Shown here piece by piece: positions 1 to 39,889 of a stretch of DNA of 64,000 bases (the first letter of the stretch is position 1; each line of letters begins with the position of its first letter). The position numbers and the translations under genes were made by a program. The notes beneath the pieces were generated by a model that made no database searches, had not been told where the DNA came from, and saw only the letters and a program-made list of their open reading frames with translations. Where the stretch lies: positions 10,883,587-10,947,586 of the forward strand of contig NC_068986.1 in the NCBI RefSeq assembly GCF_001194135.2, read 5' to 3'. This DNA is from Octopus bimaculoides (taxonomy: Eukaryota).

Positions 1-49
1 AGAAATTGAAAATAGAAACAGTTAAACTTGAGGAAAATAACAAAAGTGC

Positions 50-210
50 CAGGCGTGGGCTGTGTGGTAAAGAGTTTGCTTCCAAACCACATGGTTTCAC
101 GTTCAATCTCTCTGCGTGGCACCTTGGGCAAGCATCTACTATAGCCCCAAGCCAAAAAAGCTTTGTGAACAGATACATGGTAGACAAAAACCGAAAAGAA
201 GCCCATTGTG

Positions 211-257
<47 letters not shown>
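50..257 (+). mobile_element. tRNA-derived SINE family A, 5' half ending in internal (CA)n
   Basis: Matches the head and central domain of complete copies at 4778-5138 and 8722-9143 (CCTTGGGCAAG...AAAGCTTTGTGA...GAAGCCC), then microsatellite. Confidence 0.75.
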
Positions 258-260
<3 letters not shown>

Positions 261-830
261 TACATAGAGACCAATAGCCAGACTACTACCTCCCACTCCG
301 AGGGGTATGTGTTTGCAATCCAGGAACAGGAAATACCAAACAAGTACCTGATGCACAAATGGGATAGAGATGCAGGAAAAGCTGTAAAATGTGACAACCG
401 ATGCAGACTGAATGGAGTTCATACTGAAGATATCACCCACATCATAAACAGTTTTCTGAAAATGCCATCACAATATTATCTACTGATAAGACATGACGTT
501 GTAGCTAGGACACTCTATAATGAAATCTGTCAGAAGGATAATCCCAAGGACAAAGAAATAAAAACCCACAATATGGTAGAAGCCATAGCCACTCATAATG
601 AAAAGAAATACTGGTGGAATGTCCCAGAGAACACCTCAATAAAATGTAAGCACAACAGACCTGATATGATTTTGGGATAGAGAAGAGAAACTGTGCACAG
701 TTGTGGAAATTAGCTGCCCAGCAGATGTTAACATAAAGTTGAAGATTAGTGAAAAAGAGAACACCTATGCTGAACTATTGAGAAATCTGCAGTTACTCTA
801 TCCAGATTACATGACCTCAGCAAGCTACTC
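258..830 (+). mobile_element. R4/Dong-like (RLE-type) non-LTR retrotransposon, 3' ORF fragment
   Basis: Translation has a degraded CCHC knuckle (CRL..EDITHII), RHDVVA, RPD and ISCPAD..K..EKENTY motifs of the restriction-like endonuclease. One in-frame stop at 678-680; runs into a gap. Confidence 0.8.
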
Positions 831-1469
831 CGCCCCCCCCCCCCNNNNNNNNNNNNNNNNNNNNNNNNNNNNNNNNNNNNNNNNNNNNNNNNNNNNNNNN
901 NNNNNNNNNNNNNNNNNNNNNNNNNNNNNNNNNNNNNNNNNNNNNNNNNNNNNNNNNNNNNNNNNNNNNNNNNNNNGGGGGGGGGGGTGAGGAAAGGTGA
1001 TTCCAAAACGTTTCCAGTTCTGGAAGTGAAGGATTGAGAGAAGTATTTAGTGTGAGATTTGGGAAAAGGGAGGCAAAGATATAAAAAATAGAGGTGGATG
1101 CATAATATGGGCCAAACCTTAATTTTTCTATCCTCCTCCTTTCCTTACCTTTTCTTTCTCTCCTCCCACTATCACCCACCCTCTCTTTCTCATTATCACA
1201 CTTTCTTTATACTGTTACACGTTTGTTTTTTCCCTTGCTTTTATTTACATCCCTTCTTTCTCTTTCTCACCTTTCCTATCAACATTTTCATTAATCACCT
1301 TTTTCCATTTAGCCATCTCGTTTATCTTTGCGGCCATGCAGGACCACAGCATGGCACCTTGGTTAAGTATTTTCTACAACAGCCCCGAACTGACCAAAGA
1401 TTTGTGGGTGGACTTGATAGATGGAAACTGAAAGAAGCCCACCGTGTATGCATATGTCTCATTTGTCTT

Positions 1470-1660
1470 GACATCACATGATAGTCGCAAATGAGTGTCA
1501 CTGTCGTACAAGAAGTGTCATTCGTTTCCAATATTCTGCAAAAACATGTCTGGCCATTGGGAAGTGTTTACCTCATACTGGGAACAAGTAAGAAAGGGTG
1601 GGCAACAGGAAGGGCATCTGCTTGTAAAAAAAAACTTGCCTCAATAAACTTTGTCCAGCC
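1470..1660 (-). repeat. Unclassified interspersed repeat (family D)
   Basis: Reverse complement resembles 9420-9600, 19770-19920 and 29400-29545. Confidence 0.5.
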
Positions 1661-1847
1661 CATGCAAACATGCAAAAATGAACACTGAGCAAAGACCATC
1701 ACACACACACACACACACACACACACTTTTATCCCTGTCTTATTTTGTTTCTTTTCAGTAAATAAGCTTTTCCACTTCATTTTTTTTTCTACTACCTTTC
1801 TTATTTCATTTTCACATTTCCAACCCCCATCTCTCTCTCTCAAAGCA

Positions 1848-1893
<46 letters not shown>

Positions 1894-2351
1894 CACACAC
1901 ACACCTTCTTTCCCTTTCAATTTATCTATTACTTACCTCCCTTCCTTGGTCTTCCACTCCATGACTCACAAACCATATGCAAATATCAAAAAGGTCTATT
2001 GACAAAACTACAATTCATAAGCATCACAGTGTCCGCATAATAATATAACACTTATAAAGCCATAAACTGTATCTCACGCACTACTACAAAGGCATACAGC
2101 ATTAGCGTTAAATGCTCTTTCACTTGAAAGGCATATGAGCAAAAGGAGGTTGTGGTGTTCATGCCTTTCTCAAAAAGCACTTGTGCAATTTGTGAAATAG
2201 GTAAGCACGTGAATTGAACCTAGCTGAGCAAACTTGCTTCACCAAGAACTTATTTAACCTGTATCACACAATTACACACACACACACATACACACACACA
2301 CAGCATACACATGCACACACACAAACACACACATACATACACATACACACA

Positions 2352-2399
<48 letters not shown>

Positions 2400-3051
2400 N
2401 NNNNNNNNNNNNNNNNNNNNNNNNNNNNNNNNNNNNNNNNNNNNNNNNNNNNNNNNNNNNNNNNNNNNNNNNNNNNNNNCCCCCCCCGGAACTAAAAATA
2501 TGCAAAGATTTGAGGTGATCATAAAAACTAAGAGATAAAAGACAGGAGAACATTTGCATAATAAAAACAATGGAGCAACACAAAACAAATTAGCATAAAA
2601 TGTGAACAGCTTCAATGACAAGGTCAATAGGTACAAGAGACAGCCTCCCAATAGATTTACTTCTATTTTCTCACAAACACAGCTTCAGTCTTTATTCTAT
2701 CAATTCTAATTATTTTACCAGACTTCATGTTCAACTTTTCCTCCACCACTTTCCAAGATGACCTCAATAAATAAGTTTTTGAAGTCACATTTAGATTAGA
2801 GAGAGAAAGAGGCAACATTTTGTTTGCCTTCAACTTTTTTTCTTTTTTGCATGTTTCATTCATTAGATTGTGGCCATGCTGCAGCACCACTTTGAAGAAT
2901 TTTACTCAAATGAATTGACTCCCGGTACTTATTTTTTCATAAAGCCTGGCACATATTCTTACATTCCTCATTACTGAACTGCTAAGTTACAGGAACCTAA
3001 ACACAATGACACCAGTTGTCAAGAAGTAATGGTGGGTAGAGGTAGAGGAAC

Positions 3052-3104
<53 letters not shown>

Positions 3105-3231
3105 ATATGCTCACACACACACACACATATGCTCACACACACATATACATGCAATTGGCTTCTACTATAGCTTCGGACCAGCCAAAGCCTTGTGAGTGGA
3201 TTTGGTAGATGGAAACTGAAAGAAGCCTGTA

Positions 3232-3339
<108 letters not shown>

Positions 3340-4016
3340 ATGGGAAGTGACTTTGTGTGCCTGATAAGGGGTTAGAATATAATAGAACAGAGGTATCTTA
3401 CTACAGAGGGGGTACTTGGCTAACCCAGTGGGACAAGGAAGGAGAAATAGAGTTAGAGAGGACAGAAAGAGAGAGAGAGAGAAACAGTGTTGGAGATGCA
3501 TCAGGATCTACCGACAGGTAACAGTGGGGAGGGGGAGTATAAATGGTTGAGAAGAGAGAGGGAAGGGTGTCCCATAGGAGTGTGAAGGGAGATGTTTAGG
3601 GGTGGGGAAGGAGTGACTGTAGCAAGTGATGCTGAGTGAAATTAGAGAGGCTGGTAGGGAGGCAAGGAGAGCATGTGGATAGGCATGTGAGGGAGAGCGG
3701 GAAGGAGGGAGGAGGGACCTGCAGGGGGTAGTGATCATGGGTGGCAAGATGGGTGGGGAGGTGTGCTGCAGGGGAGTTTTGACAGAGGACCAGCAAAAAA
3801 TCTCCAGTGAATTTGAACTCACGAGCCAGTGGATTTGGTAGATGGAAACTGAAAAAAGCCTGTCATATATGAGTGTGTGTGTCCATGGGAAGTGACTTTG
3901 TGCCTGGTAAGAGGTTAGAATGTAATGGAAGGACAGAGATAGTTATCTTACTACAGAGGGGATGCCTGGCTGACCCAGTGGGACAAGGACAAGCCTCTAA
4001 GGTAAACAACATTGAA

Positions 4017-4219
4017 CCCCTAAGCATTTAGATTTCTCTGTCAAATGTAACATTTATTCATCCACATTGTTTAGAACTAACCATGCCATTATCTTGTAGC
4101 TTTGAAATTTCAATGATGTAATTGTTTAGTTTTGGAATGACATTGTAGAGAAGGTATGAGAAGCCAGATCTGGCCAGTTTGAACATAAAACTGATATGGC
4201 TGGTTTCAATGCTAAAAAG
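4017..4219. mobile_element. piggyBac-type MITE, family 2
   Basis: Termini CCCCTAAGCATT / AATGCTAAAAAG followed by TTAA; homologous to 5441-5616 and 45607-45819. Confidence 0.65.
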
Positions 4220-4777
4220 TTAAAAGAAACCAAATCAGCCATTTCCTCTAAAAAACCAACAAATTTCCTTCCCTGTTTAGATTCCTTAATCCATGCCTCT
4301 TTTTTCATTTTTAACCAATTTTCTCTTTATCTATTTATCTCTCTCGGTAGACTCGCCACCCCAGGAGACTGACTTGCAAAAAATTACTCTTATCCTACAC
4401 TTTTATCACCAGCAGAGTTTTCTCAATCATATTGCATCTTGTTAAAAGATTAAAGAATAACACGAAAAGGAAGTAAAAAAAAATCCAATGTAGAAATAAT
4501 ATCCAAGTAGAATATCTTAAAATGTACTTAAATGATAACACAAGATTAATTACTAAAAGAAATAAATACATTGGTTATACACATACATACACTTTCTCTC
4601 CAAATACTTCATCCAGGTGGACCGGTTCAGAGAAATATATTCTTGTGTTTGGAGTTTTTAAATCTAAAAGTCTGTTTCACTAATATCAGAGCTTATCAAC
4701 ATTCAATCTAGGTCCCTTAAATGTGAGTATGTCCGCTGGGTATAGCAGATATTTGTTGTTAAAAATGTATATCCATA

Positions 4778-5138
4778 GGTGCAAGAGTGGCTATGTGGTA
4801 AGTAGCTTGCTTCCCAATCACATGGTTTCGGGTTCAGTCCCACTGCAAGTGTCTTCGACCAAAGCCTTGGCAGTGGATTTGGTAGATGGAAGCTGAAAGA
4901 AGCCCATCATATATATATGTATATGCTTGTGTGTCTGTGTTTGTCCTCCCCCACCATCTCAACAACTGATGTTGGTATGTTTACATCCCCCGTAACTTAG
5001 CAGTTCGGCAAAAGAGACCGGGAAAATAAGTATTAAGCTTACAATGAATAAGTCCTGGGGTTGATTTGTTCAACTAAAGGCAGTGCTCCAGCATGGCCGC
5101 AATCAAATGACTGAAACAAGTAAAAGAATAAAAGAATA
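4778..5138 (+). mobile_element. tRNA-derived SINE family A, full length
   Basis: tRNA-like head (GTGGTAAG...GGTTCAGTCCC), conserved centre, internal TA/TG microsatellite, tail ending GACTGAAACAAGTAAAAGAATA; many copies in the window. Confidence 0.85.
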
Positions 5139-5720
5139 GGCATGGGTGTGGCTGTGGGGTAAGAAGCTTGCTTCCCATCCACATCGTCCTACGGTTCCAG
5201 GTTCAGTCCTACTGCATGACACCTTGGGTAGGTGTCTTTTACTATAGCCTCAGGCCAACCAAATCCTTGTGAGTGAATGGTAAATGGAAACTGAATGAAG
5301 CCCATCATATAATGTGTGTGTGTGTGTGTGTGTGTGCATGCTTGACCCCCACCGTGCTTGACAACCGGTGCTGGTATGCTTATGTCTGTAACTTGGTGCT
5401 TTGACAAAAGGAGACTGACAGAATAAGTACCAGGCTTTGATCATTTAGCATTTAAACCGGCCGAATCCAGCCAAAATATTCTGTTTTATGGTCAATCTAA
5501 AACTAAGCCATCACATCGTTAAAATCTCAAAGCTACGAGACATTGCATGAAGAATTGATCACAATGTGAAAGAAATAAGTATTGCATTTGACAGAATAAT
5601 CTGAAATGCCAAAGGGTTAAATGGAAGAAATAAATACTGATACTGGGGTTGATTCATCCAACTAAAATTCTTCAAGGCACTGCCACAGTCTAAGGACTAA
5701 AACAAGTAAAAGATAAAAGA
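5139..5720 (+). mobile_element. SINE family A copy interrupted by a piggyBac-type MITE (5441-5616)
   Basis: Head-to-tail with the previous copy; SINE tail resumes at about 5630 after the MITE end AAAGGG-TTAA. Confidence 0.7.
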
Positions 5721-5789
5721 TCTTCAGACAACATTTTCTGGTCCCAACAACTTATTCAAACTTCATAAATGATGTCTTTTTAATTCAAA

Positions 5790-6175
5790 CGTTGTCATCA
5801 TTTAGCATCCGTTTTCCCTGCTGGCATGGGTTAGACGGTTTGACCGGAACTGTACCAGGCTCCAGTCTGGTTTGGCATGGGTTTTATGGCTGGATGCCCT
5901 TCCTGACGCCAGCCACTCCAAGAGTGAAGTGGGTGTCTTTTACGAGTCACGAGCACGAGTGCTTTTACGAGTCACCAGCACACGGGTGCTTTTACGAGTC
6001 ACCGGTACACGGGTGCTTTTACGAGTCACCGGCACACAGGTGCTTTTACGAGTCACCGGCAAACGGGTGCTTTTACGAGTCACCGGCAAACGGGTGCTTT
6101 TACGAGTCACCAGCAAACGGTTGCTTTTACGAGTCACCGGCACACAGGTGCTTTTACGAGTCACCAGCATGGGTT
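5790..6175 (-). mobile_element. RTE-type 3' tail and body (family C) with 27-bp internal tandem array
   Basis: Minus strand ends GTCAAACCGTCTAACCCATGCCAGCAGGGAAAACGGATGCTAAATGATGAC, the same tail as 14010-14125, 18700-18770, 54640-54710 and 60077-60130. A related body follows the RTE ORF stop at 16389. Confidence 0.8.
5932..6169. repeat. Minisatellite, 27-bp unit GTGCTTTTACGAGTCACCGGCA(C/A)ACGG, about 9 copies (first partial)
   Basis: Directly visible; gives the periodic RVLLRVTGK translation in the ORF track. Confidence 0.95.
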
Positions 6176-6372
6176 AAATGGGCTGAATCCTGTAAGTACT
6201 GGAAGACCAGGCAAACCTGTGGCAAAGGCAGAGCAAGCCCCTAACTCTTCACCTTGTTCTAAAAATCAGCTTAATATCGATGCCCCCTCCCCCCACAAAA
6301 AAAGTGGGGGGACCGTATCAGATATTAAGCTGATAAGAACAGACACTACCATTTGATCTTAGCCTAAAGGCT
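6176..6372 (-). ncRNA. U2: U2 snRNA-like sequence, nearly full length, probably a retrocopy or pseudogene
   Basis: Minus strand reads GCCTTTAGGCTAAGATCAAATGGTAGTGTCTGTTCTTATCAGCTTAATATCTGATACG, then a stem IIb hairpin, GATATTAAGCTG plus Sm site ATTTTT, TAGGGGCTTGCTC and a stem-loop IV-like end. It is colinear with metazoan U2 as recalled. The first ~10 nt are missing or diverged. Confidence 0.9.
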
Positions 6373-6399
6373 GCTGCTGTTAAATTTTTAATCCCAAAA

Positions 6400-6575
6400 T
6401 GGCAGAATGACCAGCACAGACAAAATGCTTAGCATTTCTTCTAGCTTTTTATGTTTTGAATTCAAATTCCACTGAGGTCAACTTAACCTTTCACCTTTTC
6501 AGGGTCAATAAAATAAAGTACCAGCTGAGCACTGACGTCAATGTAACTGACTTGTTCCTTCTGCCAAAATGTAAA
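6400..6575 (+). mobile_element. SINE family B (Meta-domain-like), degraded
   Basis: TTCAAATTCCACTGAGGTCAAC...CTTTCA...GGGTCAATAAAATAAAGTACCAG core shared with many copies. Confidence 0.7.
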
Positions 6576-6626
6576 ACCATTAATTTTTCTTAACCACTTC
6601 CACCGTTTTAGCTTAAAAAAAAAAAC

Positions 6627-7281
6627 GTATCTATTTTAAAACGGGGGCGCCAGTTTTCATTCATGTTTTATGTAGTGTTTTTGGTACCAAAAGACTTTCA
6701 AACTTCGTATACTTATCTATTTTGTGTTATAGAACAGAAAAATATTTTTGTATTCGAATTTATTTCATGTAAAAAATTGTCTTATTTCGATAATTTCTAC
6801 TAATCACTGACGTCTATTCAGTTGAAAACAGTTAGCGCTGTAACGGTGTATACCGTATTAATCCCCTAACCCTAACCCGACTGTTAACCATAACCGTAAC
6901 CCTAACACTAAAACTAACCCTAACTCTAGAATCCGAACTCTAAAATTGTTACACACATAGATACACACAGCGTAATTTATTATATAAACAATATATGCGT
7001 ATAAATTACGATTAAACCGGATGAAATATGTCACAGGGAATAACATTTTTATGACCGCCCAGCAGTAACTCTATTGAGCTGAATAGACGTCAGTGATTGG
7101 TTGAAATTACAGAAATACGACAACTTTAACATGGAATAACTTGCGAATTCCTTTTTTTTGTTAAGAAGACTAAGAGTAAAAGATGTTTTATATGACACAT
7201 TCTACCAGTGTCCCAAGTTTCAAAGTGTTTCGTTAGTGTTTCGTTAAGAAAATACTGGCGCCCCCGTTTTAAAATAGATCC
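6627..7281. mobile_element. Non-autonomous DNA transposon (Mutator-like MITE) with 26-bp perfect TIRs and 8-bp TSD
   Basis: ATCTATTTTAAAACGGGGGCGCCAGT (6629-6654) is the exact reverse complement of 7254-7279; AAAAAAAC flanks both ends (6619-6626, 7282-7289). Superfamily inferred from G-starting termini and TSD length. Confidence 0.85.
6862..6925. repeat. Degenerate telomere-like (CCCTAA)n tract inside the MITE
   Basis: CCCTAACCCTAACCC...CCATAACCGTAACCCTAACACTAAAACTAACCCTAAC. Confidence 0.75.
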
Positions 7282-8721
7282 AAAAAAACTTCAAAATTTC
7301 TGTTTTTATTATTTTTCAAAAATTTACAGTTCTTTCAAAAATAAATTTTCATGATCATTTACTGTCCTCGTTCTTTGCAGGCATGGGCTTCACAGTCCTT
7401 TGGCTTGTCAGCTCCTGTCAAACCATGCCAGCAGGGAACAAAGGTCATTAAACGATAACAAACTATCCTTGAAAGATCTCTAATATTTTTCTTTAGTATT
7501 TCAAAAGAATTTTAGTTGTCCCTCCAAATTTATGCAATAAAATGTCCCACAACCCATAAGTAAGCTATCTCTTTCTCCTTCACCCATGGCACAAAATAAA
7601 CACCAGATATCTCACACAAAATAACCTACCTGCACCTATTATGTTTACTTGAAAACGCTTAATATTGCAATTTAAGGTAAAGAAATAAATGACCTTGGTG
7701 TAAATTTATGCTTGGCTTTTATATAACCCTTCTCTGTTGTTAGACAAGATTATCGCTGTTCACTTGCCAGTCAAACAACATACAAATGAAACTAGCTTTC
7801 AGTGCTTTTACTATGCTCTAATTCCTTTCAACACAGGAATGCACACTACCACGTTTCATTTTCTCATTTCCTTTCTGTTTATTATTATTATTATTATTAT
7901 TATTATCATCATCATGTTGAGTCCTCTTACTTGTGACATTTAAATAACTGCGCAAAAAGTGGTCCTTTCAAAATATCCTGACATTTCTCCTGTTTCATAA
8001 CAAAAGAACAGCAATTCTAAGCAAGTCAAAGAAAGAGACCAGGGAATTACAACAAATCTAAGCCAGTCAATGATACAGACCTGGAAATTCAATTTTTCAA
8101 AGCACTTCTCACATAAACTTATATTTTCTAAGATTTCCCATTTTCTTACTGTTGTGATAAGTTAAGTTGAAAGTGTGAGTGCTGACTGAGAAAACGTTTT
8201 TATATATGTTGTTATATCCAAGACTACTTTATATGATGTATTTTTTTTTAGTCCTAATGTAGGAGGATGTGATTTGAGGGAAATTTGGCTGCTATATCTA
8301 ACAGGCTCAGGCCATATTAGTATTAGTTTTTGACAGGTGTTCAGTATTAACTTATATAAGCTCATTTCCTCTTTACTTAGAAGCTGCAATCTCTTGGCAG
8401 AAGAATAGAGATAAGTAAACATTCACAATGGCTAATGAGCCAAAAACCAGCCTTTCCATAATGTCTACAGCTTCACACAGTATTCATTCAGCACAGACTC
8501 CTCACATTGTGAATTTCATAGGCAGAAACTGAAAGAAGCCTGCTGCATAAGTGTGTTCAAATGACTGAAACAAGTAAAAGATAAATCATACAATATGCTT
8601 TAGGGTTGGGTTAGTGTTAATAAGAATTTTAAACAGTTTTAGATGAGCAAAATTAACCAATGTCCTTTCAGTACACAAAACTGAGAGCAGTAATGATTGT
8701 TATATAAACTATGTCAACATA

Positions 8722-8884
8722 GGCACAGGAGTGGTTGTGTGATAAGTAGCTTGCTGCACAACCAAATGGTTCTGGGTTCAGTCCCAATGCGTGACACTTT
8801 GGCCAAGTGTCTTCTACTACAGTCTCGAGCCGACCAAAGCTTTGTGAGTGGATTTGGTAGACGGAAACTGGAAGAAACCCATCG

Positions 8885-8935
<51 letters not shown>

Positions 8936-9143
8936 GTATGTATGTATTTGTGTGTTTGTGTTTGTCCTTACTGCCATAGCTTGACAACCGATGCTGGTAT
9001 GTATGTCCCTGTAACTTAGCGGTTCGGCAAAAGAGACCAATAGAATAAGTACTAGGCTGGGATCGATTTCTTTGACTAACACCCTTTAAAGCAGTGCTCC
9101 AGCATGGCCACAGTCAAATGACTGAAATAAATAAAAGAATAAA
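8722..9143 (+). mobile_element. SINE family A, full length
   Basis: Same head, centre, (CA)n and tail as 4778-5138. Confidence 0.85.
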
Positions 9144-9173
9144 AAAATATGTTGATGGGCTTAAGTTAATAAG

Positions 9174-9204
<31 letters not shown>

Positions 9205-9739
9205 GTAGTTCTATACAATTCCACACAATCCTCGCTTCCACATCCTCTGGACTATTTATAAGCACTCATAAAGCAGTCACGGGTGACACTCCTTACTTCA
9301 AAAGGATCACTACACTATTATGTAATATTCTCAGAATAATTAACTTCCTTATTTCAATTACTGCTACATTTATCATTGCTTTTAAAAGCCACTTTTCCAT
9401 ACTTGCGTGAGTTAAACGGAATTTGTCGAAGCAGATTTTCTACAGCTGGAAACCCTTCTTGCTTCCAACACTCACCTGTTCTCAAACAAGGTGATATTTT
9501 CCCATGGCGAGACATGTTTCCATGCAAGGTTAGAAATGAAGGACACTGCTCGTAAAACAGTGACACTCGTTTACAACAATCAAATGAATCACTGACCACA
9601 ACATACTGTATGCATTAAAAGTAATCAAACCTGTATGATATTAGGAAGTGATAAATGTAATTTATTTATTTTCCATTTTTTTCGGAATTTTATTTAAATC
9701 CTCATTCTCTCATTAGCAACTTTCTTCCTTCTTTTTTTC

Positions 9740-9965
9740 TTTTACTTGTTTCAGTCATTTTATTGTGGCCATGCTGGAGCACTGCCTTTAGTTGAACAAA
9801 TTGACCCCAGGACTTATTCTTTGTAAGCCTAGTACTTATTCTATCGGTTTCTTTTGCTGAACTGCTAGGTTACGGGGACGTAAACACACCAACATCAATT
9901 ATCAAGCGATGGTGGGTGAACAAACACAAACACACAAATACATACATACACACACACACACACAC
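9740..9965 (-). mobile_element. SINE family A, 3' half
   Basis: Reverse complement of the family A tail. Confidence 0.8.
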
Positions 9966-10704
9966 ATATATTTGTATATATATATATATATTATTTTATT
10001 TAAAAGAGTTCCAACTCTGTCTNNNNNNNNNNNNNNNNNNNNNNNNNNNNNNNNNNNNNNNNNNNNNNNNNNNNNNNNNNNNNNNNNNNNNNNNNNNNNN
10101 NNNNNNNNNNNNNNNNNNNNNNNNNNNNNNNNNNNNNNNNNNNNNNNNNNNNNNNNNNNNNNNNNNNNNNNNNNNNNNNNNNNNNNNNNNNNNNNNNNNN
10201 NNNNNNNNNNNNNNNNNNNNNNNNNNNNNNNNNNNNNNNNNNNNNNNNNNNNNNNNNNNNNNNNNNNNNNNNNNNNNNNNNNNNNNNNNNNNNNNNNNNN
10301 NNNNNNNNNNNNNNNNNNNNNNNNNNNNNNNNNNNNNNNNNNNNNNNNNNNNNNNNNNNNNNNNNNNNNNNNNNNNNNNNNNNNNNNNNNNNNNNNNNNN
10401 NNNNNNNNNNNNNNNNNNNNNNNNNNNNNNNNNNNNNNNNNNNNNNNNNNNNNNNNNNNNNNNNNNNNNNNNNNNNNNNNNNNNNNNNNNNNNNNNNNNN
10501 NNNNNNNNNNNNNNNNNNNNNNNNNNNNNNNNNNNNNNNNNNNNNNNNNNNNNNNNNNNNNNNNNNNNNNNNNNNNNNNNNNNNNNNNNNNNNNNNNNNN
10601 NNNNNNNNNNNNNNNNNNNNNNNNNNNNNNNNNNNNNNNNNNNNNNNNNNNNNNNNNNNNNNNNNNNNNNNNNNNNNNNNNNNNNNNNNNNNNNNNNNNN
10701 NNNN

Positions 10705-10744
<40 letters not shown>

Positions 10745-10850
10745 TTTACTTGTTTCAGTCATTGGACTGGTCATGCTGGGACACTGCCTTGATGTGATTT
10801 AATCAAATAAATCAACTCGAATACTTTTTTTTTTTAGATATATTGTGTAT

Positions 10851-11035
10851 GTGTTGCTGTATGGTAAGTAGCTTGCTTACCAACCACATGGTTCGGAGTT
10901 CTCTCCCACTTCTTGAGCAAGTGTCTTCTACTATAGCCTTGGGCCGACCAAAGCCTTGTGAGTGGATTTGGTAGACGGAAACTGAAAGAAGCCTGTCATA
11001 TATCATCATCGTCGTTTAACGTCAGCTTTCCATGC

Positions 11036-11072
<37 letters not shown>

Positions 11073-11275
11073 CTGTGTTCGTCCTCCCACCATCGCTTAA
11101 CAACTGATGTTGGTGTGTTTACGTCCCCATAACTTAGCGGTTCGGCAAAGGGGTCGATAGAATAAGTACTAGGCTTACAAAGAATAAATCCTGGGGTCGA
11201 TTTGTTCGACTAATGGTAGTGCTCCAGCGTGGCCGCAGTCAAATGACTGAAACAAGTAAAAGAAAACAAAAAGAA
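10851..11275 (+). mobile_element. SINE family A with a short RTE-tail fragment (about 11003-11036) in its microsatellite
   Basis: Family A head and tail; CATCATCGTCGTTTAACGTCAGCTTTCCATGCTA insert. Confidence 0.8.
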
Positions 11276-11450
11276 TAATACCAATTCTACTAGTCTCTCT
11301 TGCTGGACCACCAAGTTACGGGAATGTAAACAAACCAACACCACTTGTCAAGCGGTAGTGGGGAACACAGAATTTCAGTTTCCATCAACCTAATTCATTC
11401 ACAAAGCTTTGGATGACGACAATAGAAGACACTTGACCAAGATAGAAAGG

Positions 11451-11483
<33 letters not shown>

Positions 11484-12309
11484 TGAGAAAAAGAGAGAGA
11501 GATAGAAAGAGTGTGTGTGTGTGTGCGTGTGCTTGTGTGTGTGTGGATGTGTGTGCACGTATTGTGTTGTATTTAATTACTTGTTTCAGTGCGTCAACTG
11601 CACAAAGTTGTCGGCTGATATGCAGCATGTTGTTGATGATTCCATTTGTGCGTTAGTTCTACCAAATAGTGTTAAAAGTGCGAAGGAGAAAAGAAAAAAA
11701 GGGGGGAAAAAACGATAAAATTATAGAGAAGCCTCAACACAGAGACAAACTGAGAAGAGGGAAGAAGAGAAAAACATGAAGAAAGTTGGGGGGTGGGGGT
11801 GGGGGTGGAAAGGCATGAGTGAAAAAAAAAGTTATGAGAATGAGGAGAAAAAGAGACACGAATACAGAGTGAATAAGCGAAGGCGAAGGAAGAAAACTGT
11901 GTCAGATGAGAAGTTAAAAAGGAAAAAGAAAGTCAACTAGTTGCTTATATCTCACATTTCAATTAATTATTTTAGTTTCAGAGAAAACTAAAATAACTGA
12001 AGAAGAAAATATAGGATAGAAAAAAAGGGGGAAAATATGCTAAAACAAGAATAATACATTAATGTTTGTATTAGTCAGCCATTGAAAAGATATGATCTTA
12101 GTGTCAGGATGTGGGACAATATTATTATTCTTACAGCAATGTCAGTCAGTCATATGATTGTCACCCTAACACATCAACAGGCCAAGTTTGAAGAAGAATT
12201 TGCGGCAGATTTTGGCTGTTAACGTCGATCACTCTTTTGAGGAAACTATTGCATGCTTCGTATCAGCCCCTTAAATTATGCCTTATGATTTAGCTGAGAT
12301 GGGAGTTAT

Positions 12310-12520
12310 TGCTAATAATAATTAGCAATAATGGCTTGTCGGTTTCAAATTTTGGCACAAAGCCAGCAATTTTGGGAGGCAGGGTTAAGCCAATTAGACT
12401 TATCGGTTCTGAAAGGATGAAAGGTAAAGTCAACCTCGGCACAGTTTGAAAGCAGAACATAAAAACGTATAAAATGCTGAGCAGCATTTTGTCCGGGAAG
12501 CTAGCGATTCAGCCACCTGA
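12310..12520 (-). mobile_element. SINE family B
   Basis: Reverse-complement core GGATGAAAGGTAAAGTCAACCTCGGC. Confidence 0.7.
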
Positions 12521-12654
12521 ATATATTAACACAAGTTAATATATGAATAACAAAATAGGAATTTTGAAAGAAGTATCTATAAAACTAGTTTTTAAACATT
12601 GATTGGCTAAGGGGGTCCACCAGAAAAAAATGATAACGAAAGGGGTCTGTAGAT

Positions 12655-12867
12655 CAGTGCTCCACAACCGGTGGCAAATTGGTGTGCCAGAAGACAATGC
12701 CAGGTGTGCTGCAGCAGAACCTGAATATCATTTTTTTCCCTGTACTTTGTTATATTTTTAGTTCAGGTGTGCTGCCGAATTTTTAAAAGAATATAAGTGT
12801 ACCGCAAGTGTACACTTCTGAAAAGAATATAAGTGTACCGCAAGTGAAAAAAGGTTGCAGAGTATTG
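12655..12867. mobile_element. hAT (Charlie-like) MITE
   Basis: Imperfect TIRs CAGTGCTCCACAACC / GGTTGCAGAGTATTG; imperfect 8-bp TSD CTGTAGAT / CCATAGAT; internal direct repeat AAAGAATATAAGTGTACCGCAAGTG twice. Confidence 0.6.
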
Positions 12868-13960: not shown

Positions 13961-14174
13961 TTAATAATAATGATACTGGAGCCTGGTGTTGCCATCCGGT
14001 TTCACCAGTCCTCAGTCAAATCGTCCAACCCATGCTAGCATGGAAAGCGGACGTTAAACGATGATGANNNNNNNNNNAACCCATGCTAGCATGGAAAGCG
14101 GACGTTAAACGATGATGATGATGATGATGATGATAATAATAATAATAATGATAATAATAATGATAATAATAATA

Positions 14175-16074: not shown

Positions 16075-16825
16075 TGCTGGATGTGTAATGTCAGTGTGCA
16101 TATACAACAGAGTGTAAGTACCCTGAGAGGAAAGTTGGACATAAGAAGCATTGGATGTGGTGTGCATGTGAGATGTCTGTGCTGGTATGGTCATGTGCTG
16201 TGTATGGATGAGGACAGCTGTGTGAAAAAGTATCACACCCTAGCAGTAGAGGGAACCTGTGAAAGAGGTAGACCCAGGAAGAAATGGGATAAGGTGGTGA
16301 AGCACAACCTTCGAACGTTGGGCCTCACCAAGGCAATGACAAGTGACCAAGACCTTTGGAGATATGCTTTGCTTCAGAAGACCTGGTAAGCCGAGTGAGA
16401 CCATAACCGTGGCCTATGTATGCCAGTGCATCATAACTGGCCCATTTAAAAGTACCCTTCAATCATTGGGCAGTAAACTGCACTTGCAAAGACCTGTTGA
16501 GGCAAGTGAAGTCATTGTCATGGCCGATGCCAGTACTGCCTGATTGGCACTCATGCTGGTGGCACATAAGAAGCACCATTCAAGCGTGATCAATGCCAGT
16601 ATTGCCTGACTGGCTCCCGTGCCAGTGGCATGTAAAAAGCACCATTCGACATAATCGCTGCCAATGCCGCCTGACTGGCTCCTATGCTGGTGTCACATAA
16701 AAAGCACCATTCAAGCGTGGTCGATGCCAGTACCACCTGACTGGCCTCCGTGCTGGTGACACATACAAGCACCCATTACACTCTGGGAGTGGTTGGCATT
16801 AGGAAGGGCATCCAGCTGTAGAAAC
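16075..16825 (+). mobile_element. RTE-clade LINE 3' end with 3' UTR containing tandem subrepeats
   Basis: CLCWYGHVLCM...VEGTCERGRPRKKWD, typical RTE C-terminus; stop at 16389, then family C body with AAAAAGCACCATTC subrepeats. Confidence 0.8.
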
Positions 16826-17448
16826 TTTGGCGGTGCTCCAGCATGGCCACAATCAAATCATGGAAACGATGATGATAGTGAGAATAGTAATGATGGATGA
16901 CAATGACGGTCACAACACCAAAGTTCATTATGATGACAATGACACAAAGACGATGATGATGGTAATAACAATGATGCTAATGACCGTGAAAATGATAACG
17001 ATGGTAATGATATATCGGAATGGGAAATGAGATGCAATAACAATCACATCTTGCAAGCATTCGCCATAACATCATCAACGAAAAGTCTTTTCAACCAGGA
17101 ATCAACCAAAACAAAACTGGGTCACAAATTCACCTGACCACTTAGCTTAGTTCCAACTCTACTACAGTGCCTACCACAGAAATTAAATTAAATATTGATT
17201 AATTGATTGATTGATTGATTGATTGAATCTTGTGAAACAAATATTTTTCGCATCAATAAATTCTATAAAACAAATGATTTTGCTTGTTTTTCTTTTTTGT
17301 TGTTATTTTTGGATTGGGTTTTATCTTTTAGAAAATTGCAAATAAAAGATGGGCTTCTTTTTTTTTTTCTGTTTTTCTTGCTATTTCTATGACCTCACAC
17401 CACACAGACTTCTCTTCCATAGAAACACTTCCTGTTTCCTATTCTTAG

Positions 17449-18699: not shown

Positions 18700-19075
18700 T
18701 AGTCATCATCATCATCGTCGTCGTCGTTTTACTTCCGTTTTCCATGCTGGCATGGGTTGGACGGTTCAATTGATGTCTGGGAAGCCAGGAGGCTGCACCA
18801 GGCTCCAATCTGATCTGCCAAAGTTTCTACAGTTGGATGCCCTTCCTAATGCCAACCACTCCGAGAGTGTGGTGGGCGCATTTTACATGTCACTGGCACG
18901 GGAGCCAGTAGAGTCCGGGGGGGGGGGCCTGGCATCAACCACATTCCAATGGTGCTTTTTACATGCCACCAGCACAAGAAGCCAGTCAGGCGGCACTGGC
19001 AACGACCCACACATGAATGATGTTTATTGCATGCCAACAGCACAGGAGCCAGTCAGGCGGCACTGGCATCGCCCA
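18700..19075 (-). mobile_element. Family C (RTE-tail) element
   Basis: (GAT/GAC)n tail, TTTTCCATGCTGGCATGGGTTGGACGG, subrepeats GCCAGTCAGGCGGCACTGGCA. Confidence 0.8.
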
Positions 19076-20561
19076 CAGAGGGAGGGAGAATTGATGCACT
19101 GTTGTAAAGCAGCCTTTTGCCACTTTTGTATCGTCTTTTGACAACGGTTGTCACTCTGACAGATATTGTTATATTCCAAAGTCATCAATAGAATATTTTT
19201 ATCTGGTACTGTATGACCCCCAGTCATACAGTGTTATTATCCTCAAAAGGTTGGATCAATATAACGTCCATTCAGCATCACAGTATAATTACTATATCAA
19301 CACAGTGTACATGTACTCTTGACCTTCCTGACCTTCTCCCTTTCGACCAGCTACTGGTCTATATTTAATGACTGGCTATTACCACTTTTTACAGGGAGGA
19401 ACATACAGTTTCACTATACAACTTGCATAAACACTGAAAAATATATCAACAGTATGAACTCAGTGAAACTACAACACATTATAAGACTGTAGTAAATCCA
19501 AAGGAAAAGTCTTGCATACACATAATGGGCTAAAATTTTACAGCAACATAATTAATAGAAAAGCATAAATTTTAAAAAGAGTTCAAAATTTAATTATGCT
19601 CAACAGCTGTTTCCTTAGCAATAAACATCATTAATTCCACAAGTACACAAAGTATGAACTATATGAAATTTATGCTTTACTACTTTGTGTTCTTCACACA
19701 TACACACAAATACAATTATCGTTATTTTGTCCACTTATCCATGCTTGCATGGGTTGAACAGACTTGGAAGTAGATTTTCTGTAGCTTGATGCCCTTCTTG
19801 TTGCTAACCTTTATCTTTTTCCAAGCAAGATATTATTTCCCCCTTGACCAGGCATGGAAGATTGGAAAGGAACAACTCGCTTGTATGACACTGATGCTCA
19901 TTTACAACTATCACACAAAAAGCACCCAGTCCACACTCTGTAGAGTATTTGGTGTTAGGAAGGCAATCCAACTGCAGAAACCATACCAAAGCTGACAGAA
20001 GACCTTGGTGCAGCTCTTCAGTCTCGCCAGCTCCTGTCAAACTCTTCAACCCATGCCAGCATGGAAAGGGGATATGCAATGATGACAACGATGATACATA
20101 CATATACACACATATGTAAATCTTTATACAAGCATAGATATCTAAAGTATTTTCTCAAAAGATCGACACACTTCAGTAAGCACTTTTACTGAGTTTTGTA
20201 GTGAAATTTCTCAGCATGGAGAACGGAGATCTATATTTGCCTTTCATCCGAGTTGGATGGTCGATAAAATATGTAGAAATAACACACTGCGAAAAAGGAA
20301 GAGGTGGGGCCAATTCCATTGGCTATCCTTTCCCCTGACTACACCCACACACACTAAAAATTGGCTTTGTGGCAAGTCAAAGGAAATCATTATTTTAATA
20401 ACAAGAGGGTGGTGGATGCAAATTTGATTAACCCGCCATTCATTAGGAATGTAAACTTGCAAGACAACAAAGTAGTTTTATGCATCAGCAACCTTTGTTT
20501 TTGTTTGTTTTTTGTCAATAAAACTGAAAGGAACAGACAACCTAACACAAAACATGTGCAA

Positions 20562-20619: not shown

Positions 20620-21650
20620 GGCAGTGAGTTGGCAGAATCGTTAGCACGCCGGGCAAAATGCTTAGCGGTATTTTGTCTGCTGCTACATTCTGAGTTCAAA
20701 TTCTGCTGAGGTCGACTTTGTCTTTCATCCTTTTGGGGTCGATGAAATAAGTACCAGTTACGCACTGGGGATCGATGTAATCAACTAGCCCCCTTCCCCA
20801 AATGTGAGGCCTTGTGCTCCCAGTAGAAAGGATTATTATTATTATTATTATTATTAAGGCAGCAAGCTGGCAGAATTGTTAACATGCCAGGCAAAATGTT
20901 CAGTAGCATTCCATCTGTTTACGTTCAGAGTTCAAATTCCTCCAAGGTCGATTTTGCTTTCCATGAAATTGCTGGCCTTGTGCCAAAATTTGAAGCCATT
21001 ACTATTATTATTATTATTATTACTGAGCAGGCAGCACACTAGGCAAAATGCTCAACAACATTTGTTTTGGCTGTATACGTTCTGAGTTCAAATTCAACTG
21101 AGACTGATTGACTTTCATCCTTTCAGGGTCAATAAAATAAGTACCAGTTACATACTAGGGTTGATGTAATTGATTCATCCCCTTAGCCAAAAATTTCTGG
21201 CCTTGTGCTTAAAGTAGAAAGGATCATCATCATCGTCATCATCATCATCATTAAAATAATCATTATTCTTTTCTGCTCTAGGCACAAGGACCGAAATTTC
21301 GGGGGAGGGTGCCAGTCGATTAGATCGACCCCAGTATGCAACTGGTAAATTAAGAATTTATCGACCCCCCAAAAGGATGAAAGGCAAAGTCGACCTCGGT
21401 GGAATTTGAACTCAGAACGTAAAGACAGGTGAAATAGCGCTAAGCATTTTTGCCTGGCATGATAACATTTCTGCCAGCTCAGCGCCTTTAAAATAATCAT
21501 TATTGGCTGTAGATTGGCAGAACCATTAGAGCATCAGAATAAACACAGCGAAGTATTTCCTCTATGTTCTGAGTTCAAATCTTGCCATCTCAATTCTCCC
21601 TTTTGTCCTCTCAGCATTTATAAAATTAAGGACCAGTCAAGTATGGGGAT
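20620..21650. mobile_element. Cluster of about 5 SINE family B copies in both orientations, interleaved with (ATT)n
   Basis: Repeated GGCAGAATCGTTAGCA heads and TTTCATCCTTT.GGGGTCGAT cores. Confidence 0.8.
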
Positions 21651-25290: not shown

Positions 25291-25526
25291 CAGTGGGCAA
25301 GAAAAAAAATCAATAGAACTGGGATTGACTCATTCAACTAATAATTCTTCAAGGGGTTGCTCCAGCATGGGCACAGTCTAATGACTGAAACCAGTAAAAG
25401 ATAAAAGTCTTATTGATCTCTGTATCTAATAATTGGTGAAGACTTTGTCACTGAGTGTGTGTGAGAGAGACTGCTTGCTTGGACACAAATAACTTCAAGC
25501 TGTTTGTTCAAACAAACATACATTAA

Positions 25527-25790
25527 CCCTTCCGTTAGCAACCCAGCTGGAACTGGAACGACACCCTTCCGTTAGCAACCCAGCTGGAACTGGAACGACT
25601 CTGGCTCTGAGTACAAATGTCTTGTTTTCATAAGTTTTGAATTAAAATCTTCCACCAAACCTTAGACAGAATTTATGTTCCTAAACACTAGCTGAATGAT
25701 AACTAAGCTATTTTACTAAATTCTTTGTTATATTTAAAATTAATTGAAAGAAACACAGAACATCTCAACAGAAATATGGTAACAAAAGGG
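25527..25790. mobile_element. piggyBac-type MITE, family 1, with 37-bp left-end tandem duplication
   Basis: TTAA-CCCTTCCGTTA ... GTAACAAAAGGG-TTAA; 25526-25562 is repeated exactly at 25563-25599. Confidence 0.8.
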
Positions 25791-25872
25791 TTAAAATATA
25801 TAATAGAGAAACAATTCTTAACCNNNNNNNNNNCAAAAGGGTTAAAATATATAATAGAGAAACAATTCTTAA

Positions 25873-26139
25873 CCCTTTTGATATCAACCCAGCTGAAACT
25901 GGCTCTGGCTCTGAGTACAAATGTCTTGTTTTCATAAGTTCTGAATTAAAATCTTCCACCTTAGTTCTGAATTAAAATCTTCCACCTTAGTTCTGAATTA
26001 AAATCTTCCACCTTAGTCACAATTTAGGTTCCTAACAATAGCCTAAAGATAACTAAGTTATTTTACTAAATTCTTTGTTATATTTAAAGTAATTGAAAGA
26101 AACACAGAACATCTCAAAATAAATATAGTAACGAAAGGG
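25873..26139. mobile_element. piggyBac-type MITE, family 1, second copy
   Basis: TTAA-CCCTTTTGATA ... GTAACGAAAGGG; internal TTAGTTCTGAATTAAAATCTTCCACC subrepeat. Confidence 0.75.
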
Positions 26140-28239: not shown

Positions 28240-28890
28240 TTGGCACAAGGCCAGTAATTACACCCACACCCCAGTACTCAACTGGTACTTATTTTATCAA
28301 CCCCGAAAGGATGAAAGGCAAAGTCAATCTCAGCAGAATTTTAATTCAGAACATCAAGACGGATGAAATGGCACTTAGCATTTTGCCCAGCATGCTCACA
28401 ACCTTACACAAACAAAATATTCTTTTCTACTCTACAAGGCCTGAAATTTTTGGAGAGGGAGCCAGTCAATTACATCACCCCCACCCCTCAGTACACAACT
28501 GGTACTTAATTTATCGACCCCAAAAGAATGGAAATCAAAGTCGATCTCAGCAGAATTTGAACTCAGAACATAAAGGCACACAAAATACCGACAAATATTT
28601 TTCCTGGCACACTAACATTTCTGCCAGCTTGTAACCTTACACAAACAAAATATTCTTCTCTACTCTAGGCACAAGCCTGAAATTTTGGGGAAGGGGTCAG
28701 TCGATTAGATTGACCACAGTACACAACTGGTACTTGATTTATTGACCCCCAAAAGGATGAAAGGCAAAGTCAATGTCGGTGGAATTTGAACTCAGAACAT
28801 AAAGATAGATGAAATATGGCTAAGCATTTCGCCCAGTGTGCTAACGTTTCTGCCAGATCGCCACCTTAACACACAAACAAAATATTGAAA
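28240..28890 (-). mobile_element. Three tandem SINE family B copies with a shared spacer
   Basis: Spacer ACCTTACACAAACAAAATATT at about 28401, 28635 and 28863. Confidence 0.8.
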
Positions 28891-37699: not shown

Positions 37700-38160
37700 A
37701 AAGGCGTGGCTGTATGGTAAGAAGTTGGCTTCCCTACCACATGGTTCTAGGTTCAGTTCCAAGGCGCGGAACCTTGGGCAAGTGTCTTCTACTATAGTCC
37801 CGGGCCAGATTTGGTAGACGGAAACTAAAAAAAATCCGTCTTGTGTGTGTGTGACAACCAATATTGGTGTGTTTACAAGGCGGCAAGCAGGCAGAAACAC
37901 GCTAGGCGAAATGCTTAGCGGTATTTCGAATGTCTTTACGTCCTGAGTTCAAATTCCACCGAGGTCGACTTTGCCTTTCATCCTTTCGGGTTCGATAAAT
38001 TACCTACCAGTTGCGTACTGGAGTCGACCTAACCGACTGGTCCCCTCCCCAAAAATTTTTGGCCTTGTGCCAAGAATAGAAAAGGATATTGGTGTGTTTA
38101 AGTCCCCGTAACTTAGCAGCTCGGCAAAAAAGACCGATAGAATAAGTACCAGAATTTACA
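37700..38160 (+). mobile_element. SINE family A interrupted by a family B SINE (37876-38085) with 15-bp TSD
   Basis: ATATTGGTGTGTTTA at 37861-37875 and 38086-38100. Confidence 0.9.
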
Positions 38161-38196: not shown

Positions 38197-39720
38197 TGAA
38201 GGAAATTGTTGTATACAGTGCTTAGGTGCACTACAACTAAAAAAAAAAAAAAAGGCCACCAGGTGTACCGTTGGCGGATTTCAGGAAGCATGGAAGTTCT
38301 GAAGGATGTAGTGTCTCAACAGCTAACAATTGATGCGGATAGTTTACTCCACGCTTCAACAATTCTGAGCATGAAAAAATGTTTCCGAAAGTCATGGGTG
38401 CTGTGTTGTCTTTTGATTTTATAAGCATGTTCGCGAGTGTTTGTCCTATGGAATTCAAAAAGGTGCCCAAGGTTGTTGTTGGAAAGATGGTGGGATAATC
38501 TTGTGGGTGTCTACCAAGTCAGTTGCCAGAAGTCTGAGTTTCAATGTATCCATGTCCAGGGAAGCAAGACGTTGAGAGTATGGTAGATGGTCTGACGGCG
38601 GGTATACGTTTTGCTGCATGTTTCTGAACAGTTTCCAGATTTATATGTTGAGAAAGACAGGGGTTCTAGACTGGTGATGCAAATTCCAAGTGTGGACGTA
38701 CCATTGTCGTATACAGTTTTAGATAGATAGCTGGAGAGCGGCTGGCAAAGATCTTACTGGGTGATGCTAGCACCCCTTCAGCCTTCTTGACAATCTTAGA
38801 GATGTAGTTTGTCCAATGCAGATCGTTGTTTACAATAATGCCCGGATCACGTCCGCCAGAAGACTTCTTGAGATTGGTGTGGCTGAGGGAGTATGCAAAA
38901 GCTGAATTTTTCCTCCCCAAATGCATGGTGATTCACTTGTCCACAGCTAGCTTGAGTTGCCAGTCAGAGATCCATTGCTGCATTGTATCCAGGCCTGATT
39001 GTAGGAAAGATCTATAGAGCATAAGATCTGTTCTTTTTATTTCGAAGTAGAGCTTGATATCATCTGCATATTTCAGCACTGTAACGTTCTTCAAGTTAGC
39101 ATCTACATCATTAATATAGGCAACAAACAGTAGGGGTCAAAGAACGGATCCCTGTGGTACACCAGAAATCATCTCGTAGGATAAAGAATGATGTCCTAGA
39201 ACCGTAACTGTCTCTTTCCGACCGCGAACGAAGGACTTCAGCCAGTTATAGAGATCATCCTTCACACCGACTGCAGAGAGTTTTATCATGAGTCGTTTGT
39301 GTGGCACACAGTTGAAGGCTTTAGCAAAACCAAGGTAAACAGCATCCCCTCATGAGCCACCATCAGTAACTTGGCTGATTTCTTCAAGAAACTCGAAGGG
39401 TTGACTACAGCAGCTGGAGTTGGGGATAAAACCAAATTGTGAGGGTCGAATAAGGCAGTGAGAGCTCGAAAAGCCCCAGAGTGTTTCTCTGACACAGGAC
39501 CCCATCATTTTGGCGATGCAGCTAGGAAGGCTGACTGGACGGTAGTTGACAGGTGATATGTGATCACCTTTGTTGAACAGGAGATTGACACTGGCAATTT
39601 TCCAGTGCTCTAGAGTGACACAGTTGTTAAGACAGAATTGAAAAAAGGAAGAAAACTGGTGCAATAGAAAGAACCCACCACGTTTGAGAAGCAAATAAGT
39701 AACACCATCAAGGCTTACAC
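38197..39720 (-). mobile_element. CR1/L2-like LINE, 5'-truncated and frameshifted RT and C-terminus
   Basis: NYRPVSL, QFGF, KAFNCVPHK, PQGSVL, KYADD, MHLGRKN and VRPHLEFASPV motifs on the minus strand. Confidence 0.9.
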
Positions 39721-39889
39721 ATAGATATACATACATGTGACACCTGTTGCACCTGTACAGGTAATGTCGATCTGATGGAGGGAGTGAGCTTATGTCTACA
39801 CAAACATTTGATCACTATAAACAAATCATGTGTGGTTGTTCGGTAGGGAACTACAGAACCCTCATACGTCATCTAACGACGAGAGAATT

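Follow-up and report, generated by a model that had tools for sequence, protein, structure and literature searches.

A decayed U2 snRNA copy joined to an RTE-type LINE tail in Octopus bimaculoides, a candidate template-switch chimera

In a 64,000-nt stretch of the Octopus bimaculoides genome (NC_068986.1; hereafter the window), we found a retroposed unit, read on the minus strand from 6398 to 5777, in which a decayed copy of the U2 small nuclear RNA (snRNA) is joined to the 3’ end of an RTE-type long interspersed nuclear element (LINE). With moderate confidence, we favor the reading that the unit arose in a single retrotransposition event, during which an RTE reverse transcriptase copied the 3’ untranslated region (UTR) of an RTE element and then switched to U2 snRNA, leaving what is now an old and inert chimeric retrocopy. 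Four things can be read directly from the DNA: how the parts are ordered and oriented, that U2 is joined directly at its 3’ end, that the tail is shared with other elements, and that a direct repeat brackets the whole. From these observations we infer the template switch itself, the RTE enzyme as its agent, and a one-off (or low-copy) event rather than a copy of an amplifying master.

Read 5’ to 3’ on the minus strand, the unit opens with the upstream copy of a putative target-site duplication (TSD), TTTGGGATTAAAAA (6398-6385; identified in the sequence and aligned to 5789-5777), and a 4-nt filler, TTTA, that lies between this duplication and the start of U2 (6384-6381). Next comes the U2 retrocopy, full-length but decayed (6380-6174; Rfam RF00004 and alignment), followed by nine 27-bp tandem units with the consensus GTGTGCCGGTGACTCGTAAAAGCACCC (6173-5934; Tandem Repeats Finder (TRF), repeat register, alignment of the 27-mer with a 66-mer, and 18-mer counts). 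The RTE-type tail consists of a 133-bp body (5933-5801; BLASTN and alignment) and a GAT-type terminal short repeat, TGATGACAACG, that forms the 3’ end of the retrocopy (5800-5790; sequence and alignment to other copies); taken to 5791, the tail terminates in TGATGACAAC. The downstream copy of the putative duplication, TTTGAATTAAAAA, closes the unit (5789-5777; sequence, aligned to 6398-6385). U2 and the tail share the same orientation. The combination of U2, array, and tail occurs once in the window, where there is also no other copy of the 27-bp variant. An initial annotation of this DNA had listed a U2, an array, a body with its tail, and direct repeats; all are present, with coordinates right to within a few bases. 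Its U2 was placed at 6372-6176, which captured a real copy but missed 8 nt at the 5’ end, where the match reaches 6380.

The identification of the head as U2 was borne out by Rfam. RF00004 matched the minus strand at 6380-6173, with the model covered in full (positions 1-192; 103.9 bits, E = 7e-20; gathering score 46 bits). This was the sole Rfam match at gathering score across the window, and a relaxed scan of the window (E up to 0.5) added only microsatellite artefacts. In the alignment, the first 12 nt of the copy are scrambled to ACAGCAGCAGCC, the pairs of stem I are broken, the branch-point box GUAGUA has become GUAGUG, the stem-loop II region carries an insertion of 16-20 nt, and the loop of stem-loop IV has two changes; the Sm site, AUUUUUAG, is preserved. 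Directly 3’ of the copy lies the repeat array, with no 3’ box. Over roughly the first 75 nt, the most conserved part of U2, our own count on the alignment gave a difference of roughly 13%. The TTTA filler may be untemplated, or may be decayed U2 or target sequence.

For comparison with bona fide U2 genes, we used a contig that carries a tandem U2 array (here L003, positions 1-12736; ENA ERZ25068633, contig ctg155266_5x_c), in which 11 of the 13 genes score 172-192 bits; the copy in the octopus unit reaches about half of this. A functional U2 gene was ruled out by this difference (103.9 vs 172-192 bits), together with the broken stem I, the altered branch-point box, the insertion, and the array as 3’ flank, and the U2 part is a pseudogene. 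We also considered a head of the kind transcribed by RNA polymerase III (Pol III), derived from tRNA, 5S, or 7SL RNA, and rejected it: ARAGORN recognized no tRNA-like sequence in the window, and no tRNA, 5S, or 7SL match was obtained at E up to 0.5. U2 genes depend on an external RNA polymerase II (Pol II) promoter and have none internally. The U2 head therefore gives a retrocopy no means of renewed transcription, which disfavors easy amplification.

The L003 contig showed a further feature. Its 13 tandem U2 genes, most of them at 172-192 bits, repeat with a 553-bp period. An insert of ~5.5 kb breaks the array; it contains short upstream open reading frames (ORFs) and codes for a protein of 1166 aa that has endonuclease and reverse-transcriptase domains. 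The array resumes at approximately U2 nucleotide 36. This insert looks like a LINE that targets U2 genes, presumably one that is Keno/Tx1-like.

We then examined the junction between U2 and the array. The U2 copy terminates in ...CAGCCCATTTAA (longer stretch, CAGGATTCAGCCCATTTAA), and the array opens at once with CCCATGCTGG / CCCATGCTGGTGAC. Neither the sequence nor the alignment revealed a poly(A) stretch, U2 3’ gene flank, or other spacer between the two, and at most 4-5 nt at the junction are of uncertain origin. In L003, whose U2 is bona fide, the closing sequence of stem IV is ...GGCCCAC, a few bases short of the transcript end. Judged from that U2, the octopus copy appears to stop no more than about 5 nt from where the mature 3’ end would be expected, and a direct junction of this sort is what a jump onto a processed snRNA would be expected to give. 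The extra TTAA bases at the junction may be untemplated additions of the template-jump kind; reports of such additions are among those cited in PMC4494074.

The array itself was detected by TRF at 5931-6169 with a period of 27, 8.9 copies, 90% matches, and a score of 364; in register, nine units run from 6173 onward. An 18-mer of the array, GGTGACTCGTAAAAGCAC, occurs eight times at ≤1 mismatch, all within the unit (chance expectation 0.03, at up to 3 mismatches). The array derives from part of a 66-bp repeat. Aligned with the 66-mer, the 27-mer proves homologous to its 3’ part (CCCATGCTGGTGGCACATAAAAAGCACC vs CCGTGTGCCGGTGACTCGTAAAAGCACC), and the first 27-bp unit retains the ancestral CCCATGCTGGTG. 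Tandem 66-bp repeats build the RTE-type 3’ UTR at 16525-16773 (3.8 copies), 54806-54987, and 18948-19077, in each case ahead of a tail. The ORFs of 150-175 aa that run over the unit were rejected as real genes, being by-products of the 27-bp (9-codon) repeat without a Pfam match.

The tail is a recurrent component of the window. BLASTN of 5959-5790 against the window returned 54833-54656, 18900-18716, 60247-60078, 16749-16816, 20028-20090, and 14015-14115 (E from 1e-9 to 3e-29). A 20-mer from the tail core, AACCCATGCCAGCATGGAAA, was matched 10 times in the window with up to 3 mismatches allowed, four times exactly, where 0.01 would be expected; tail sites include 5813-5832, 14027-14097, 18739-18758, 19736-19755, 20048-20067, 54675-54694, 60100-60119, and others. 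Tails thus occur at about one per 6 kb of window, with about ten occurrences that lack U2. The other copies are 5’-truncated at differing points, and no small-RNA head was recognized on any of those in the window by ARAGORN or by Rfam (E up to 0.5). These copies are ordinary truncated LINE 3’ ends.

A 5’-truncated RTE-type element on the plus strand (16160-16880; TRF, ORF, and sequence) served as our reference for the tail. Its RTE-like reading frame (16160-16389) comprises the last ~75 codons, with the C-terminus ...GRPRKKWDKVVKHNLRTLGLTKAMTSDQDLWRYALLQKTW and a stop at 16387-16389. Downstream of this stop lie a 66-bp array, then a partly deleted tail body, and then GAT-type repeats; the copy at 20070-20095 has a like GAT-type ending, AATGATGACAACGATGATAC. 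This confirmed the statement in the initial annotation that the same body and tail follow the stop of an RTE ORF at 16389 and occur elsewhere without U2, with RTE-like as the appropriate label. The array and tail of the unit are a 5’-truncated form of the 3’ UTR behind this reading frame, which counts in favor of a template switch during RTE retrotransposition.

The C-terminus contains RGRP..W....LG.....DR..WR, which we take to be an RTE motif. These ~75 residues gave no Pfam match and no homologue in the protein database searched. Assignment to the RTE clade is tentative, and draws on this motif, on the microsatellite-type 3’ end, and on published reports of RTE elements in octopus. RTE elements dominate octopus LINEs (PMC9115989; PMC8967140; PMC13282606), and the Octopus element RTE-2_OV has a repeat-filled 3’ UTR (PMC9115989).

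Within this group of tails, the one in the unit stands apart. It has an 18-bp deletion relative to the other copies and is 76-81% identical to them by alignment, with those copies 85-91% alike among themselves. Against a consensus of the other copies, 17.4% of sites differ, 21 of the 25 changes being transitions (Jukes-Cantor distance 0.20). The tails also share a conserved terminal hairpin, which precedes the GAT-type repeat by about 25 nt and has the form CCGU...CCAUG-NNNN-CAUGG...ACGG; one of its pairs shows compensatory changes among the copies. In the unit, the hairpin reads CCGU..CCAUG-CCAG-CAGGG..ACGG, with one A-G mismatch. From the parallel with other ‘stringent’ LINEs, we regard this hairpin as a candidate recognition element for the reverse transcriptase.

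To evaluate whether the unit entered as one insertion or two, we took the 25 nt outside each boundary, aligned them locally, and compared the scores with those of 8,000 equally spaced pairs of 25-mers from other parts of the window. The repeat around the whole unit was the sole candidate above background (score 9, P = 0.017; 11 of 13 positions aligned, or 12 of 14 in a variant that allows an indel). It lies 4 nt ahead of the U2 5’ end and 1 nt past the last base of the tail, and spans 13 bp in one copy and 14 bp in the other, with one mismatch and one indel (2 of 14 positions differ). In the same test, duplications were unsupported around U2 alone (P = 0.26), around the array plus tail (P = 0.23), and around the tail alone (P = 0.55). 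The proposal in the initial annotation that the bracketing repeats are a decayed TSD therefore gained moderate support, and separate TSDs for U2 and the tail, which that annotation had named as the mark of two adjacent insertions, gained none.

The insertion target is a resident short interspersed nuclear element (SINE) that lies outside the unit (6570-6400, minus strand; at least 10 paralogues in the window, 3’ ends aligned by eye). Because the 5’ copy of the duplication is the A/T-rich 3’ end of this SINE, the downstream copy duplicates the last SINE bases, as a true TSD would. An empty site would be expected to hold TTTGRRATTAAAAA as a single copy. A paralogous empty site taken from other SINE copies was unusable, since the copies diverge in their A/T-rich ends at the insertion point. 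The SINE family ends in ...GCTAAGCATTTCGCCCGGCGTGCTAACGATTCTGCCAGCTCGCCGCCTTAA(TAA)n and is very abundant, with at least 10 copies in the window, among them those at 6400-6570, 59792-59907, 28272-28829, 37909-38056, 20630-20780, 21032-21450, and 12409-12493. No tRNA-like head was recognized in it by ARAGORN or Rfam. A 229-bp ‘tandem repeat’ at 28399-28886 is in fact two adjoining copies of this SINE.

The components of the unit have decayed to a similar extent (17.4% in the tail, ~13% in the first ~75 nt of U2, and 2 of 14 positions in the duplication), which fits a single age for all three. A distance of 0.2 would correspond, on a calibration from Bonar et al. (PMC13282606), to very roughly several tens of millions of years, although part of it may be subfamily difference rather than age.

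These results suggest the following course of events. The reverse transcriptase of an RTE-type LINE would have nicked the A/T-rich end of the resident SINE, used the GAT-type terminal repeat of an RTE (or RTE-tailed) RNA for priming, and reverse-transcribed first the tail and then the 3’ UTR repeat array. The enzyme would next have moved by a jump onto the 3’ terminus of a mature U2 snRNA, which it copied through to the 5’ end. Completion of the insertion would leave a TSD of 13-14 bp, after which the copy would have decayed at the neutral rate. Four of five hallmarks of such chimeras were found in the unit, namely an snRNA module at the 5’ end, a truncated LINE 3’ end with its terminus, a direct junction, and one flanking TSD of moderate support. 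Given an RTE-type tail about every 6 kb, one would expect rare jumps onto abundant snRNAs.

Several points weigh against this account. The TSD is imperfect and only moderately significant, and the completeness of U2 at its 5’ end is only approximate, given the scrambling of its first 12 nt. Calling the event a one-off draws on prior expectation and not on a copy count. In addition, the tail of the unit is a distinct variant (a 27-bp instead of a 66-bp array, the 18-bp deletion, and 76-81% identity), and a separately evolving non-autonomous family would also give such a variant. Finally, the 2026 annotation of O. vulgaris lists one ‘SINE/U’ family of 369,490 bp that includes 19 full-length copies, near-identical and on average about 734 bp long (Bonar et al., PMC13282606).

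It is conceivable, if clearly less probable, that the unit belongs, as a decayed copy, to a non-autonomous retroposon family that amplified with a U2 head and an RTE tail, similar to the crocodilian SINEU elements and mobilized by RTE. The founder of such a family, having landed at a site that allowed transcription, could have been either a template-switch chimera or a U2 gene just upstream of an inserted RTE tail. None of the ~ten other tails of the window shares the tail variant or the 27-bp array, as a separate lineage would predict; U2-headed families can amplify, as SINEU shows (PMC4494074); and an automated pipeline lists for O. vulgaris, besides the ‘SINE/U’ family, one ‘SINE/U-L1’ (‘U-L1’) family of 52,753 bp (PMC13282606). 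Against a family stand the single copy in the window without truncated siblings of the 27-bp variant, and the lack of an internal promoter in U2. An exhaustive protein-level search likewise found no other ORF across the array and U2, in a library that probably does not contain this genome. The ‘SINE/U’ entry, moreover, could equally be a tandem array of U-snRNA genes, as are the 13 near-identical 553-bp U2 units of L003. Of the two alternatives left by the initial annotation, we favor the one-off template-switch chimera over the less probable U2-headed SINE family. Two independent events seem unlikely, whether a 5’-truncated RTE copy and a U2 retropseudogene landed next to each other or one of them inserted precisely at the other’s end. 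In favor of two events, the region is packed with retroposons, with an RTE-type tail about every 6 kb; insertions that nest in or abut one another are common; and the bracketing repeat is imperfect and A/T-rich. However, neither part has a flanking duplication of its own (P = 0.23-0.55), and U2 lacks a 3’ tail, either poly(A) or GAT repeat, that would explain its separate mobilization. The two parts also share their orientation and abut at the exact U2 3’ end, and no more than 1-4 nt separate the bracketing repeat from either outer end.

Less likely still, in our judgment, is an origin from an internally deleted RTE whose full-length relatives have a U2-derived 5’ end, or from a retrocopy of a U2-gene transcript that read through into an RTE tail downstream. 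LINE families with U1- or U2-derived 5’ ends do exist, such as crocodilian Tx1-Mar (PMC4494074, PMC4758252), and a head and tail without a body have the look of a deletion derivative. On the other side, the window holds no full-length RTE for comparison, and the junction at the mature U2 3’ end, free of gene flank, disfavors read-through beyond a few bases. An assembly artefact, in which a U2 locus and an RTE tail were falsely joined inside the 240-bp tandem array of a gapped draft, is very improbable. The window does contain 17 runs of N, as expected of a scaffolded draft, and misjoins typically arise at tandem arrays that exceed the read length. Yet there is no run of N within 5700-6450. U2 is contiguous with the first repeat unit and the tail with the last, so even after a misjoin within the array the U2/array junction itself would have to be real. 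One physical insert is also what the bracketing repeat argues for.

The search for further copies of the junction was conducted largely at the protein level. These protein searches failed to return the window’s own ORFs, so their negatives say nothing on copy number. ORF 5792-6241, which covers the tail, the array, and the end of U2, had no match in the protein database. For the antisense ORF 5928-6353 (array and U2), exhaustive HMMER searching returned only low-complexity repeat proteins and spurious antisense-U2 ORFs of other eukaryotes, none of which joins the array to U2. A protein search with the junction query 6105-6353 produced one match, which led to the unrelated tandem U2 gene array of L003, and no second junction. 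In metagenome, prokaryote-genome, and viral DNA collections, the array 18-mer gave only single isolated chance matches, which are uninformative on copy number. The tail 20-mer, used as a control with its 10 matches in the window, gave 0 in the viral collection, the one collection scanned with it.

Chimeric retrocopies that join U6 to L1, for which template switching during target-primed reverse transcription is the accepted origin, were reportedly described by Buzdin in 2002. Doucet et al. (2015) extended template-switch snRNA chimeras to the L2 and RTE clades, including three U6/RTEX-2 cases in Anolis, and reported that ‘stringent’ LINEs yield chimeras only and no free snRNA pseudogenes (PMC4476161). 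The octopus unit shares with these snRNA/LINE chimeras a complete snRNA at the 5’ end, its direct same-orientation join to a 5’-truncated LINE 3’ end, one TSD, and a ‘stringent’ LINE as partner. It differs in having U2 instead of U6, in occurring in a mollusc, in a junction that lies within a tandem-repeat 3’ UTR, and in a GAT-type end instead of poly(A). Among the cases cited in PMC4494074, U2/LINE chimeras are limited to a few human examples with L1 or Alu. Our literature search turned up neither a description of a U2/RTE chimera nor one of a U2-headed SINE from molluscs.

The crocodilian SINEU-1, -2, and -3 (Kojima, 2015; PMC4494074) also have a U2-derived 5’ head, for which a template switch onto U2 has been proposed as origin. 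In contrast to the unit, with its one copy, RTE-type tail, and insertion at an A/T-rich SINE end, they are demonstrably multi-copy with subfamilies, have no LINE-like tail, are assigned to Tx1-Mar, and prefer Mariner-N4_AMi as target. The initial annotation had given as background that SINEs borrow LINE 3’ tails and that U1/U2-headed SINEs (SINEU) are described from crocodilians; SINEU itself, however, has no recognizable LINE 3’ tail, and its mobilizer is thought to be Tx1-Mar, not CR1 or RTE (PMC4494074). An RTE-tailed U2 element would for that reason be more than just another SINEU. We accordingly rejected membership of the unit in crocodilian SINEU on account of its RTE-type tail and SINE A/T-end target, a distinction drawn from the published description of SINEU. 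Transcription of SINEU is itself treated as an open problem, with no internal promoter in the U2 head (Kojima, PMC4494074).

RTE-tailed SINEs derived from tRNA are also listed for O. vulgaris (‘tRNA-CORE-RTE’; PMC13282606). These share with the unit a non-autonomous design and a 3’ recognition tail of the RTE-type LINE, but their heads contain internal Pol III promoters, which the U2 head does not. RTE as the source of many SINE tails goes back to Malik and Eickbush (1998), as cited in PMC9115989. The ‘SINE/U’ family of O. vulgaris shares with the unit its genus and a label that implies a U-snRNA-like head; it is a table row from an automated classifier, given without consensus, structure, or tail, and the ‘U-L1’ family likewise comes with neither sequence nor description. 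We regard this entry as a lead and not as evidence.

Other features of the window were noted in passing. A degenerate, interstitial telomere-like (CCCTAA)n stretch lies at 6864-6928, about 470 bp from the U2 unit. Perfect tandem duplications at 25526-25599 (37 bp x 2) and 25937-26017 (26 bp x 3.1), both 100% identical, flank a 10-N gap at 25824-25833 and may be assembly artefacts. Further non-LTR fragments are found at 42251-44881 on the plus strand and 39353-39811 on the minus strand, with weak Pfam matches to Exo_endo_phos_2 (E = 7e-5) and RVT_1 (E = 1e-3) that fall below the curated cut-offs. A mariner-like transposase fragment was recognized by eye at 62228-62587 on the minus strand.

If the unit is a one-off chimera, it would be a natural-history record that changes no concept, adding a mollusc and a U2 example to the case for snRNA template switching as a general property of LINE reverse transcriptases, including those of the ‘stringent’ RTE clade. 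It is possible, albeit doubtful, that the unit is instead a fossil member of an octopus family of U2-headed SINEs mobilized by RTE, which might be the ‘SINE/U’ (about 369 kb) of O. vulgaris. With such a family, snRNA-headed SINEs would have arisen independently a second time, outside crocodilians, and for the first time with a bona fide LINE-derived tail from which the partner can be named. Should the junction prove to be multi-copy, Pol II-type snRNA heads would have been recruited into SINE-like families more than once, and the shared tail would identify the first clear LINE partner of such a family. It would also become easier to ask how U2-headed elements are transcribed, in a genome with reported expression of the partner LINE.

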